Below are positions 27,308 through 33,300 of a stretch of 64,000 nucleotides of DNA, piece after piece. A program made the translations under genes and the position numbers. The stretch is taken from assembly GCA_965112735.1 (NCBI GenBank), contig OZ218956.1, forward strand, positions 434,001 through 498,000, read 5' to 3'. Numbering within the stretch: position 1 is the stretch's first letter; every line of letters begins with the position of its first letter. Source of the DNA: Phaeosaccion multiseriatum. Taxonomy: Eukaryota; Protista; Ochrophyta, other classes. A model generated the notes under the pieces. The model did no database searches. It had not been told where the DNA came from and was given only the letters and a program-made list of their open reading frames with translations.

Positions 27308-30300
27308 TTAACCGATACTCCCCAGCCTCTCCTCATCATCCTCCTCCGCCCCCTCCTTTGGTGGGTCCCTGGCAACGCTCTGGTAGGCGGAGGTAGAATC
27401 CGATCCTCCTCCGATGCCTGTGGAAAGAGTGGATGAGCGCCGGTGGGGCGCTATAAAAGGTCAGCAAGGGTGAGCAAGGGAGGGTCGAGGGGCGAGGGGA
27501 GGACGTGGTGGATGGGCTTAGATGGGCATAGTCCACCTTGGATAGGCATCGTCTAATGCGCGTGCGTCTTGGACTGCGCCGAGTGCTTCTCTCCCGTTGG
27601 GCCCGCCCCCCTCTCTTGGCAATCCTACCTGCTAATACCCTAACCTACCCTATAGCCTAGCCACACACACAACGCACGAACCTGCTGTGGCCTCGACCCT
27701 CTTCATCTTCCTTCCGGCCCGCACCGCCGCGCCAACCACTCCGAGCAGCACGACCGAAGCAAGTGCTGCACCGGCGACCATAGTGCTCGAGCTGCCATCC
27801 CCAGAGCTTTCCTCACTCCCCGCCGCTGCCGAGCCAACCTCTATGCTCCCCGTAGTAAAGTGACTGAGTAGCAAGGCGTCCTCCTCTTGGCCCGTTCGGA
27901 AGCTCATGCCGTAGATCACCACCCCTTCCTCCAAGCTGAGTGAGGCCTCACCCCAGCTACAGAAACCTCCCGTCTCGGGACAGTCGTCGTCTGCCTGGGC
28001 CTCAAGTGTCACGGCAGCAACAGCAGTGAGGCGCCGCCCGGCGAGTTCAATAATTTCTTGCGTGCGGCGTCGGTGGGGGTAGGGGAGGGACCCGTCGTCG
28101 CCATTGCCGATGGTGATGCCCTCCTCTGCTAGGGTGGCTGTGTTTCTGCTACTTCTGCTGCTGTGCGTGTTGGTGGAGTCACTGTTGTCATCTGTGAGAC
28201 GGCGTGTGTCTTGCAGATCGGCGTAGGCGGTGATGGTGCTGTCCGCAGCCGCAGAGTCTGAGGGGAGGGGGGGATGGCAGTGGATGTGACGAGAGGCGAG
28301 GAGGAGGGGAGGAGGAGGCGTGACGAGCCAGGAGGAGGCGGAAGAGGGGGGGTTGAGGAGGTGGGGGTGAGGGGCGGGGAGAAAGGCCTCAGCATCTCAA
28401 GAGCACAACACCTCTCAAGGCTTTAGAGCTATAGAGTTATAGAGCTCCGCTACCAAACTAGCACTCACAGTAGAAGGCGGTACCGTGCTCGACCCCTCTC
28501 TCGAACACAATGTAGGAGAAGTGGCCCGAGAAGAGGAGCGCAGTGTCCTCGGAGTTGGGTGCGTTGTCAAACTCAAACTCCCCTCCAGCATCTGTGTCCA
28601 CCACTCGCATCACTCCTGCGCTAAAGATGAGTCCCTCCTCCTCGCGAAGGAGCTCCCCCAACTCCACCGTAGCCTCGGCCGAGTAGCCATCCGCGCCGCT
28701 GCTGCCGCTGCTGCTGCCGCTGCCGCTGCCCAGTGGACCCGAGAGATCAATGGCCTTGATGGTGGACGGAGCAAAGGTCGGTGCTTCTGTAACGCCACAG
28801 TCGGTAGAATACATGTCGGGTGTGAGGGTAAAGGAGGCGGGCACGTCTTGCAGCTGCACCCACACCTCCTCCTGGTCGGCGAGAGAAATGGTGAGAAGGC
28901 CCAAGCCCGAGGTTGTCGAGTCCTCTTCGAAACGGGTATGCAAGTCGTCGAAGCTTGGTCCGTTGGGCACACAGAGCATGTCTCCTTCCTCTGCGTTGAA
29001 GTCTTCAATGATGTTCGTCTGTGTGTGGGGCGAGGAGGGGAGGACGAGGGGAGACAGAGGCATATGGGGGGGAGGGCGAGCGGAGGGGGGAGGGAGGTGG
29101 GGAGGGGAGGGGAGGGGAGAGGAGGGGCGTTGGGGCGAGAAGAGTCAGACAAGCTTTATGCGGGTGCGAGGGTGTGCGTGAGGAGGGAGAAAGGAAGGAA
29201 GGAAGGCAGGAGGGAGAGAGGGACGGAGGGAGAGAGGGAGAGGGAAAGGGAGGGGAGGGAGGGAGGGACGGACAGACGGAGGGAGGGAGGGAGGGAGGGA
29301 GGGAGGGAGGGAGGGAGGGAGGGAGGGAAGGAGGGAGGGAGGGTGGGAGGTGCTAGTCGAGGTCTCTCTCTCTCTCTCTCTTCCTCTCTGCAAAAGCATG
29401 ACAGACACAGCGTGGAGACCGAGCACGAGAGCCCCACCTTGGAGGCGGAGACACCGAGGATACACGGGCCTCCTCCTCCTCCTCCTCCTCCTCCTCCTCC
29501 TCTCGGGCCCTCATTTGACTTGTTGACTTACCACAGAGTCGTCGGAAGTGTGGAAGATAACAAACACGTCGGCCCCTTCCCCTCCCCTCAATACATCTCG
29601 CCCCTCCCCCGGCACCAACACGTCGGCCCCCTCGCCCCCCGATAGAAGGTCACCACCCCCCCCTCCATAGAGTCGGTCGTCTCCCCCCGAACCGTAGAGA
29701 TAGTCCCCTCCCCCCCCGCCGTGGATTGAGTCTTGTCCATTGCCCCCACTCATGGAGTCGGCTCCTTCTCCTCCGAACATGACATCAGCTCCCCTGCCCC
29801 CCGCCATGAAGTCGGCTCCTTCACCTCCGTACATGGCGTCTGCGCCTTCGCTGCCGCTCATGGAGTCCGGACCGTTGCCTCCGAGCAGGACGTCGCTTCC
29901 GACGCCGCCCCATATACTGCAGGGTAGGAGGCAGGGTGGGGGATAGAGGGTAGAGGGGAGGGGGGGGGGTCATGAGTGTGCGGAGAGAGAGAGGGAGAGG
30001 GAGGGGGGGGAGAGAGAGAGGGAGGGGAGAGAGATACAGAGAGAGAGGGAGGGGGAGGGAGAGGGGGGGAGAAAGAGAGAGAGCGGGGGAAGCGCTTGTT
30101 GGAGCCGTGGGGAGCGCGGTCGTTCTCCGAGCCAAGGGATCAGCAGGGTCTTCGGGTGTAGTGTGAGGTTGGGCTGTGTCAATGATGCTCTGCGACGCAG
30201 AGTGACCCCAGACTGGGAGGCAGTAGGTCAGCAAGCAAGCAAGCAGGCAAGCAAGCAAGCAAGCAAGCAAGCAAGCAAGCAAGCAAGCAAGCAAGCAAGC

Positions 30301-33300
30301 AAGCAAGCAAGCAAGCAAGCAAGCAAGCAAGCAAGCAAGCAAGCAAACAAGCAAGCAAGCAAGCAACAAGCAAGCAACCAATCAAGCAAGCAAGCAAGCA
30401 AGCAGGCAAGCAATGAAAGCAAGCAACCAACCAACCCAACAACCAACCAAACAACCAACCAACCACCCACCCACCCAAGCAGCCAACCAGCCAACCAACC
30501 AATCAACCAATCAATCAACCAAGCAGCCAACCAACCAACCAACCAACCAACCAACCAACCAACCAACCAACCAACCAACCAACCAACCAACCAACCAACC
30601 AACCAACCAACCAACCAACCAACCAACCAACCAACCAACCAACCAACCAACCAACCAACTAACCAACCAACCAACCAGTCACCCACCTGTCACTGCCGTT
30701 TCCCCCATTGATGATGTCGTTACCGAACCCTCCCGACAGATAGTCGTTACCCTCCCCTCCGAGCAGCCTGTGTGTGTGTGTGTGTGAGAGAGAGAGAGAG
30801 GAAGAGAGAGAGTGTGTGGTGTACGTGAGAGAGACGTAGGCGCATGAGCTCAGAGTCTTCGGAGCAGCAAGGCCCCTCTACTGCCCCTGCCTGCCCCCCT
30901 CCCCCCTCCATCCTACACACACACACACACACACACGATTACGTAGGTCTTAGGTGAATCCCGTAATTCAGTATACTCTCCTTCCCCTTCCCCCTCCACA
31001 CACACACACGATTCCGTGATTCCTGTAAGTCAATAAAGTTTACACCCGCCACCCGTAACCCCCATTTCCTCTATTCTCTCTGCGCTGAACGGCCGACCCA
31101 ACCGTTGAGAAGAACACTCGCTTCGCTTACTCACGTATCGTTTCCGAGCGACCCCCACATGCTGTGTCGAGGTAGTCGACATCGACATCGAAGCCGCGTG
31201 TCGATATCAAGTGTCAAGATCAAGGCGGGCCCACATTAGAGAACAAGGGACAGGGGGAGGGAGGGGGGTGTGTGAAATGAGAGAAGAGAGCCCTGTTCCG
31301 TCCGGCAAGGAGTAGCGAAGCATTCACATCCACGCTACACACACTTTCAGTTTCTGCTGCTAATCCTGTTCGGTCAATATGAGTTCCAGTTCCACAATGG
31401 ACTGACGAGGGGGAGGGGGTTGGGGGGTCAAGGCACGCGAAGGTTTGCCCAGCCCAGACCCAAGCAGCTTCTTAGGCACTGGCCATACCCATACACCTGC
31501 CTGCTGCCCATATGCCTGCCCATACCCGTGCGCCTACACTCACAAGTCCGTTCCGTTGCCCCCCTCCATATGGTCGTTGCCCGCCTCTCCCATCATGTAG
31601 TCGTAGCCACTGCCCCCCTTCATCAAGTCGTTCCCATCGCTTCCGTACATCCTGCAGAGTAAAAACGGCCGTTGAACAATGTCAGGTGTAACGTGCATTG
31701 AACAATGTCCGTTCGGTCAAGAAAGAAGACACCCTTAGATGGATTCTCGGGCAGAGACACGACAGCAGCCCTCCAGACAGGAAGGAAAGCAAGAAAGAGA
31801 GACACAGCTCCTCCTCCTCCTCCTCCTCCTCCTCCTCCTCCTCCTCCTCCTCCTCCTCCTCCTCCTCCTCCTCCTCCTCCTCCTCCTCCTCCTCCTCCTC
31901 CTCCTCCTCCTCCTCCTCCTCCTCCTCCTCCTCCTCCTCCTCCTCCTCCTCCTCCTCCTCCTCCTCCTCCTCCTCCTCCTCCTCCTCCTCCTCCTCCTCC
32001 TCCTCCTCCTCCTCCTCCTCCTCCTCCTCCTCCTCCTCCTCCTCCTCCTCCTCCTCCTCCTCCTCCTCCTCCTCCTCCTCCTCCTCCTCCTCCTCCTCCT
32101 CCTCCTCCTCCTCCTCCTCCTCCTCCTCCTCCTCCTCCTCCTCCTCCTCCTCCTCCTCCTCCTCCTCCTCCTCCTCCTCCTCCTCCTCCTCCTCCTCCTC
32201 CTCCTCCTCCTCCTCCTCCTCCTCCTCCTCCTCCTCCTCCTCCTCCTCCTCCTCCTCCTCCTCCTCCTCCTCCTCCTCCTCCTCCTCCTCCTCCTCCTCC
32301 TCCTCCTCCTCCTCCTCCTCCTCCTCCTCCTCCTCCTCCTCCTCCTCCTCCTCCTCCTCCTCCTCCTCCTCCTCCTCCTCCTCCTCCTCCTCCTCCTCCT
32401 CCTCCTCCTCCTCCTCCTCACCTGTCTTCCCCTGCGCCCCCCTCCATTCTGTCGTTGCCCTCCCCCCCCGACATGTAGTCATCGCCTCCTTCTCCGTACA
32501 TTCGGTCTGAGCCCTCGCCCCCGATCAAACCATCGCCACCGTTTCCTCCGTGCAAGCTGCAGGCAGGCGTACGGGCACAGAGAGGGGTTGGGGCGTGATG
32601 AGAGGGACCCAAACCGGAAAGAGAGGTTGGGAGGAGACGGTGAAGGGCCCAAAACAAGGCAAGAAGGAAGGGAGACCCTTTCCTGTCACACACACACTCT
32701 CTCTCTCTCTCTCTCTCTCTCTCTGAGCATGGCCTCCGATGTATGTGGGCACCAAAGCCGTGTCACTGTCCACCCCCACCACTACTCGCCCTGTCGCCTT
32801 GCTCGTCACCCCGCAAACCCATTGTGGTGTCCGAGATGGAGACTTTTGCTTCGGGAATGAGCACTCACGTGTCGTTCCCGCTTCCGCCGTGCAATGTGTC
32901 GACTCCAGGACCTCCGAAGAGCACATCGTTGCCCTGTCCGCCCACCACCTGGTCACTCCCTGCGTCGCCCCAGAGTCTGAGTGCAGGGCATCAGAGATCA
33001 AGCACGCGGGGGAGCGGTGAGGGGAGAGTGAACGGAACCCCAGAGGCAGCGAAGCGACGCATTTGGAGTTGGACGGGAGAAACAAAGGAAGCTACGATGA
33101 GTCGGAGCGTGGCCGGAGTGCGATATTGGATAGAAGAGTGCGTTACGCCTCCTAGTCTGTGTGAGCAGGCAGTTGAGGAACGCCTTCTCCCGAAAGTTAG
33201 CTCCTCTACTCACGCCCGCTCCTCTCCCCTCAGCCTCCCACCAGCTCATCACTGGAAAGCAATCTTCGCTTACGTGTCTGCGCAAGAGGGAGCGGGTACA

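Follow-up and report, generated by a model that had tools for sequence, protein, structure and literature searches.

Introns locked to the repeat register of a predicted RTX beta-roll gene in Phaeosaccion multiseriatum

Introns cut the RTX array at one nucleotide of the repeat unit

In a gene that encodes a long array of short repeats, how do successive introns come to lie at the same point of the repeat, and could such a layout let splicing change the length of the array? These questions are raised by a gene on the minus strand (33659-27308) of a 64,000-nucleotide (nt) stretch of the Phaeosaccion multiseriatum genome (assembly GCA_965112735.1, contig OZ218956.1, positions 434,001 to 498,000), which we call the window and whose numbering we use throughout. 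The gene is predicted to encode an array of about 33 RTX nonapeptides, 30 of which form in-phase units in exons 2 to 7 according to a register table. An earlier note on this DNA had drawn attention to five consecutive introns in the array and had suggested that the exons between them make a splice-tunable beta-roll. We read the minus strand over 26.5-38 kb, checked intron and exon coordinates by script, and ran exon lookups, searches, and folds exon by exon.

The array is cut by seven introns. Six of these fall on the same nucleotide of the 27-nt unit, in phase 2, within the codon that follows the Asp of GGxGxD; the remaining one lies 4 nt upstream of this shared site, in phase 1 within the Asp codon itself. 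Because the six introns share one position, the exons that they enclose are whole multiples of 27 nt (108, 135, 108, 27, and 81 nt, or 4, 5, 4, 1, and 3 units). If introns were spread uniformly over the 27 positions, the chance that five further introns would hit the nucleotide taken by one of them is about (1/27)^5 = 7e-8. The five introns described in the earlier note (32868-32557, 32421-31652, 31543-31162, 31134-30768, and 30686-29917) proved exact to the nucleotide, all in phase 2 after the Asp, as did their split codons (AC|C, AG|G, TT|C, AC|G, and AG|T, the bar marking the intron) and the enclosed exons of 135, 108, 27, and 81 nt. Our reading brings the introns at this position to six, with 33273-32977, and the symmetric exons to five, with 32976-32869; it also adds a microexon (33277-33274).

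The predicted product has 769 codons plus a stop (coding sequence, 2,310 nt), and the gene has 10 predicted spliceosomal introns. All 10 junctions read as GT..AG with pyrimidine-rich acceptors, and the frame runs from ATG to stop through 769 codons without an internal stop. The 2,310-nt coding sequence closes only with these junctions, which favors the gene model; other in-frame GT/AG pairs are sites inside exons that lack consensus signals. The parts of the gene, in order of transcription, are as follows.

33434-33659, minus strand: exon 1, 226 nt; ATG, a hydrophobic signal-peptide-like N terminus, and the first ~3 RTX repeats; weak PF00353 match
33278-33433, minus strand: intron, 156 nt, phase 1 in the Asp codon (G|AC); GTAAGC..GCGCAG
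33274-33277, minus strand: microexon ACAC, 4 nt; cag|ACAC|gtaagc
32977-33273, minus strand: intron, 297 nt, phase 2 in the codon after Asp (AC|A)
32869-32976, minus strand: symmetric exon, 108 nt, 4 nonapeptides; PF00353 E = 2.8e-12
32557-32868, minus strand: intron 1, 312 nt, phase 2 (AC|C); GTGAGT..CTGCAG; contains (GA)n
32422-32556, minus strand: symmetric exon, 135 nt, 5 nonapeptides; PF00353 E = 1.1e-16
31652-32421, minus strand: intron 2, 770 nt, phase 2 (AG|G); GTGAGG..CTGCAG; (GGA)204
31544-31651, minus strand: symmetric exon, 108 nt, 4 nonapeptides; PF00353 E = 3.4e-9
31162-31543, minus strand: intron 3, 382 nt, phase 2 (TT|C); GTGAGT..ACACAG; single copy in the genome
31135-31161, minus strand: single-repeat microexon, 27 nt; MWGSLGND plus split codons
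30768-31134, minus strand: intron 4, 367 nt, phase 2 (AC|G); GTGAGT..ACACAG; (GT)n/(CA)n and (CT)n runs
30687-30767, minus strand: symmetric exon, 81 nt, 3 nonapeptides; PF00353 E = 1.3e-7
29917-30686, minus strand: intron 5, 770 nt, phase 2 (AG|T); GTGGGT..CTGCAG; (GGTT)n/(GCTT)n over ~430 nt and a CT-rich tract
29532-29916, minus strand: terminal RTX exon, 385 nt, encoding 13 nonapeptides and the first part of the cap motif; PF00353 E = 1.3e-27
29019-29531, minus strand: intron, phase 0, separating the end of the array from the cap motif; (GGA)11 and (CCCT)n-type repeats
28469-29018, minus strand: cap exon; RTX cap motif, then an orphan region with a Ser/Gly linker
27682-28257, minus strand: exon with a second orphan region, a Ser/Gly stretch, the membrane helix, and the stop-transfer sequence RAGRKMKR
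27308-27417, minus strand: last exon; 35-residue acidic cytoplasmic tail, TAA stop at 27310-27308

Could the intervening sequences simply be translated? In four of the five introns between 32868 and 29917, the donor GTGA places an in-frame TGA 1 nt beyond the end of the exon, and four of the five lengths (312, 770, 382, 367, and 770 nt) are not multiples of 3. Together these features make read-through impossible.

The introns resemble one another only in microsatellites when compared all against all by blastn, which bears out the earlier statement that they lack mutual similarity and hold differing microsatellites, and a genome-wide DNA search found their unique parts in single copy. Intron 2 contains a perfect, uninterrupted 612-nt microsatellite, (GGA/CTC)204, at 31808-32419. 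Introns 31652-32421 and 29917-30686 are both exactly 770 nt long and unrelated in content; the identical length is probably a coincidence.

Two possible sources of the introns were tried and rejected. Intronized repeats left no relics detectable by nhmmer with a profile of the 27-nt unit. An origin from introners was rejected after blastn of the introns, a genome-wide DNA search, and a motif search: the GTTGGTGATACAG-type motif that is dispersed among introns of this genome is absent from the introns of the array, whose genome-wide matches are to microsatellite only. A search for hidden RNA genes in the introns gave only subthreshold microRNA-like matches, which lay on microsatellite.

A 4-nt microexon closes the frame at the start of the array

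How is exon 1 joined to the array? The 3' end of exon 1 is the G of an Asp codon, so that the frame closes only through the 4-nt exon ACAC. This exon is flanked by ...ccctcttgcgcag and gtaagc and is the sole AG-NNNN-GT site in the 462-nt gap. The 156-nt intron that precedes it (33278-33433) is in frame and free of stops; its retention would leave an open frame with 52 additional, non-RTX residues.

The microexon is kept in three genes of this genome, as ACAC at the present locus, as ATAC on the contig that we label C3 (locus L029, 5925-5928), and as ACAT on contig C11 (locus L031, 8359-8362). Each of the three lies between a phase-1 and a phase-2 intron and has a pyrimidine tract, a CAG acceptor, and a GTAAG donor. 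The C3 and C11 genes likewise need the microexon for their frame, and in both a TAA follows directly after exon 1. Very small exons, such as the 4-bp MPC1 exon in human and exons of 15 nt or less in plants, are reported to be included constitutively and to escape annotation often (PMC9929638, PMC8831610). The 4-nt exon of the RTX gene is like these in being needed for the frame and in having strong splice signals. It differs from them in that it is the product of two repeat-locked intron positions 4 nt apart and in that it is conserved among paralogs of a protist repeat protein.

Paralogs use the same small window for their introns

Is the intron position peculiar to this locus? Paralogs were found with PF00353 and with the orphan exons on contigs C3, C11, C13, C4, C10, and C2 and were then read. 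The arrays among them have the following layouts.

C11: exon 1 ending G|, 4-nt ACAT, then exons of 81, 135, 81, 120, and 27 nt, all phase 2-2
C3: exon 1, 4-nt ATAC, then exons of 27 nt and 648 nt (24 units), phase 2-2, followed by one intron elsewhere
C13: exons of 54 and 108 nt, phase 2-2; two of 27 nt, phase 1-1; and a single phase-0 junction immediately ahead of the Asp codon
C4, in each block: an exon of 28 nt, 1 nt longer than the repeat, which takes the phase from 0 to 1; then three exons of 54 nt, phase 1-1

At least four paralogous loci use the same intron positions. In a tally over the family, about 32 of 33 introns in RTX arrays occupy three sites within 5 nt, namely immediately ahead of the Asp codon, between its first and second bases, and between the second and third bases of the codon that follows. 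The check proposed earlier, whether paralogs keep the intron position, therefore came out positive: the phase-2 site recurs in C11, C3, and C13, and nearly the whole family falls within the 5-nt window. The companion comparison of exon number showed that it differs among paralogs. Single-repeat exons of 27 nt are present also in C3, C11, and C13, and the C3 and C11 genes share with the present locus the arrangement of exon 1, 4-nt microexon, and array, with open frames.

The family also contains traces of duplication. On C4 (L033, 2800-8800), a block of 2.1-2.3 kb with four RTX exons and their introns is present in three tandem copies of 83-96% identity. On C11, the intron ahead of the last RTX exon contains, at L031 3644-3706, a decayed second copy of that exon's 5' end (cttag|GCTCCTTGGTGGAGAAGGAATGGAC...). 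The 648-nt exon of C3 (L029, 4781-5428) encodes 24 nonapeptides in higher-order repeats, with GSEGNDVLFG...GHDKIYGG recurring.

Beyond the arrays, a cap motif is encoded shortly downstream of the last RTX exon in C3, C11, C4, C10, and C13 by tblastn; that it is split was read in the C13 sequence. The C2 paralog (L034, 6434-7328) consists of orphan C-terminal regions, with no RTX match within the 9.5 kb fetched.

Set against the C4 and C11 paralogs, the present locus belongs to the same family and shares with it the 5-nt intron window, the 4-nt microexon arrangement, and exons of 27, 54, 81, 108, or 135 nt. It uses the phase-2 site six times, against the phase-1 site in C4, and carries old introns filled with microsatellite, whereas the C4 blocks are young and near-identical. 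Among the paralogs it holds the most varied exon series (4, 5, 4, 1, and 3 units).

How did the intron layout arise?

The explanation that we favor, and hold to be probable if only narrowly so, is that a few old introns near the Asp codon spread by block duplication, that the symmetry of the exons is a by-product, and that splicing is constitutive. As tandem duplication or unequal crossing-over lengthened and shortened the arrays, very few old introns would have been copied together with blocks of repeats, in the manner of the collagens with their 54-bp exon family. The interiors of the introns would afterward have been overwritten by growth of microsatellites. Neutrality in frame and register would follow as a by-product, and splicing would be expected to be constitutive; a retained intron would meet a TGA within its own GTGA donor. 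The triplicated block of C4 and the pseudo-exon of C11 favor block duplication. The proposal in the earlier note that the array grew by duplication of intron-bearing units holds in that paralogs keep the intron position and the C4 block is triplicated, but the array studied here carries no residual trace of such an event.

Several results weigh against this explanation. The introns of the array showed no homology to one another by blastn, the units that flank introns did not resemble one another more closely than units picked at random (P = 0.32 and 0.80), and no collinear orthology of units was found between this array and the C11 array. The nhmmer profile of the 27-nt unit found no RTX relic units inside the introns. 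Arrays also grow intron-free, as the 24-unit exon of C3, expanded without introns, makes plain. Three intron sites within 5 nt imply at least three gains in one small window, which block duplication by itself does not explain. All junctions, moreover, are predicted ones.

Some of the same observations would suit a rival model, in which a hot window around the Asp codon of GGxGxD gained introns repeatedly and independently, both here and in the paralogs. The introns lack homology and each contains different microsatellites, three adjoining sites (phases 0, 1, and 2 within 5 nt) are used family-wide, unit and intron orthology between paralog arrays was not seen, and the number of introns per array varies widely, down to the intron-free 24-unit exon of C3. 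We nevertheless consider such gain unlikely, and favor block duplication over it. The introns lack target-site duplications and have no ends in common apart from the splice consensus, their unique sequence occurs once in the genome and is free of the dispersed intron motif, and the same nucleotide would need about 19 separate insertions. The bases on the exon side of the junctions differ (AC|C, AG|G, TT|C, AC|G, AG|T, and AC|A), which argues against a common proto-splice site. We know of no intron-gain process with such site specificity. The two models can be combined, with three early gains followed by propagation.

Might the gene instead be an artefact or a decaying gene, with RTX fragments parted by microsatellite junk or by assembly errors? 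The gene model is predicted from sequence alone, very long perfect microsatellites such as (GGA)204 stand between exons, two introns are both 770 nt long, and protein and metagenome searches with the cap/orphan exon found no ortholog outside this genome. Yet every one of the 10 junctions is GT..AG with a pyrimidine-rich acceptor, the frame is intact over 769 codons from an ATG with signal peptide through a membrane helix to the stop, the unusual architecture of exon 1, microexon, and array is kept with open frames across three paralogs, and the terminal exon folds as a confident beta-roll by AlphaFold2 (AF2). An artefact is in our judgment scarcely credible.

The closest parallel to block duplication is found in the collagens: their genes arose by duplication of exons and are the dominant members of the class with successive symmetric exons (PMC4838654). 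As in fibrillar collagen genes, exons of the RTX gene are whole multiples of the repeat and introns keep one phase and position, and the explanation is alike, duplication of exon-plus-intron units, which in this family is seen in the C4 paralog. The differences are that the unit here is 27 nt with phase-2 introns, whereas that of collagen is 9 nt with phase 0; that the host is a protist and not an animal; that the introns here lack mutual similarity; and that a second intron site 4 nt away yields a 4-nt microexon.

Can splicing or recombination tune the beta-roll?

If the exons are symmetric, could they serve as cassettes, so that regulated skipping or recombination between introns varies the length of the beta-roll and its Ca2+ capacity? 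The arithmetic of the earlier note was correct in that skipping preserves frame and register; its count of 16 was too low, since with five symmetric exons, consecutive and all of phase 2-2, 32 skip combinations are neutral in both. The folding cap is encoded downstream (29916-28469) and would remain in every isoform, and exon number differs among paralogs. On the other side, the splice sites are of consensus strength, the symmetry arises automatically from a common intron position, and the microsatellites differ between introns. The conserved 4-nt exon bears on the question as well: that an exon of this size is spliced most likely means that introns, and not exons, are recognized, in which case errors would take the form of intron retention and exon skipping would be unlikely. 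Exon skipping is reported to be a hallmark of animals, whereas other eukaryotes mainly use intron retention (PMC6142364).

Recombination between intronic microsatellites, the other route envisaged in the earlier note, is not favored either. The repeats differ, and the matches that do exist join unsuitable partners. A GGA match in the same orientation links introns 32421-31652 (phase 2) and 29531-29019 (phase 0). The GA/CT-type matches of intron 32868-32557 are inverted with respect to 31134-30768 and 30686-29917, and its match to 29531-29019, which is in the same orientation, again pairs phase 2 with phase 0. Recombination that joins a phase-2 to a phase-0 intron would produce a frameshift. 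The remaining shared runs are inverted. The term "stalk" was also misplaced, for the beta-roll is the membrane-distal N-terminal part of the predicted protein and not a membrane-proximal stalk. On this evidence we regard tuning through regulated skipping or intron recombination as very improbable. A broader version, in which register-locked introns are gained or propagated preferentially near the Asp codon and the neutral exons let the beta-roll differ in length between isoforms or between alleles that rapidly gain and lose exons, fares slightly better and is still improbable.

The predicted product is a membrane-anchored RTX protein

What kind of protein does the gene encode? Four of the five symmetric exons and the terminal exon each score above the PF00353 cutoff alone (the 27-nt exon is too short to scan), and the Asp and Gly ligand positions are retained in nearly all units. 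The array is predicted to be a bacterial-type, Ca2+-binding RTX beta-roll. The AF2 model of the terminal exon (29915-29532) is a beta-roll with a predicted local distance difference test score (pLDDT) of 96.4 and a 3-residue strand in every 9 residues; among solved structures in the PDB it most resembles the RTX blocks of CyaA (9p0c, root mean square deviation of 2.1 A over 91 columns), RTX lipases, and alkaline proteases. A word search with this exon returned only bacterial-type RTX proteins as relatives, at 49% identity or less. The cap motif, which is split by the phase-0 intron and kept in all paralogs, fits the consensus GGxGADxFxF...DFxxxxDxIxL from an alignment with bacterial RTX proteins; PF08548 gave no score on the cap region.

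The ~370 residues beyond the cap have no Pfam match. The cap/orphan exon (29018-28469) found no relatives by word search or by a search of metagenome loci, and a full HMMER search of 1.84 billion representative proteins gave 0 matches; the orphan region has paralogs within the same genome only. Its AF2 model is poor (pLDDT, 58.9), and the Foldseek matches are noise. The junction sequence GGNAAYGAYAC|GTGAGT is present at at least 120 sites in metagenomes, none of them in an RTX context among the matches listed.

The N-terminal leader together with the C-terminal membrane helix and RAGRKMKR points to a type I membrane protein, in which the beta-roll is predicted to be extracellular, N-terminal, and membrane distal. 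With bacterial RTX proteins (Bordetella CyaA blocks IV-V, C-terminal domains of serralysin and alkaline protease, RTX lipases, and AlgE R-modules) the product shares the tandem GGxGxDxUx repeats, a predicted parallel beta-roll, and a cap motif after the array. Unlike them, it is encoded in the nucleus of a eukaryote, by a gene with 10 spliceosomal introns. A signal-peptide-like leader at its N terminus and a membrane anchor at its C terminus take the place of a C-terminal type I secretion signal, and its post-cap region is an orphan. The protein is an RTX protein in sequence, fold, and cap but is not a substrate of a type I secretion system.

To our knowledge, the RTX domain is otherwise known almost only from intron-less bacterial genes, and no description of intron-bearing RTX arrays in eukaryotes was found in the open-access literature. 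We take the gene structure to be real and its architecture to be of the collagen type, carried out with RTX repeats; the functional gloss put on it is unlikely. If the gene model holds, this is a clear nonanimal case of a structural repeat in which coding unit and exon structure are locked together. The family comprises at least five loci in one genome and offers a test of how introns spread, by block duplication or by site-preferred gain, and it also asks how a protist spliceosome handles exons of 4 and 27 nt. The predicted protein would also show that a bacterial-type beta-roll with its cap can be diverted into the secretory path of eukaryotes and become a surface protein anchored in the membrane.

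Neighboring genes in the window

Upstream of the RTX gene, also on the minus strand, a gene with four introns at 34247-37279 encodes a phosphoribulokinase (PF00485, E = 8e-53). Its leader, by sequence reading, ends AQA|F, which we take to be a bipartite plastid-targeting sign of a complex red-type plastid; on this reading the host would be a plastid-bearing protist. Several long open reading frames at 15565-21367, minus strand, contain pieces of the N- and C-terminal domains of GMC oxidoreductases and probably belong to a single GMC oxidoreductase gene split by introns or to two such genes in tandem. At 44133-45710, minus strand, a single-exon open reading frame of 525 amino acids encodes a flavin amine oxidase, whose best relatives, at 46% identity or less, come from dinoflagellates, chytrids, and oomycetes.

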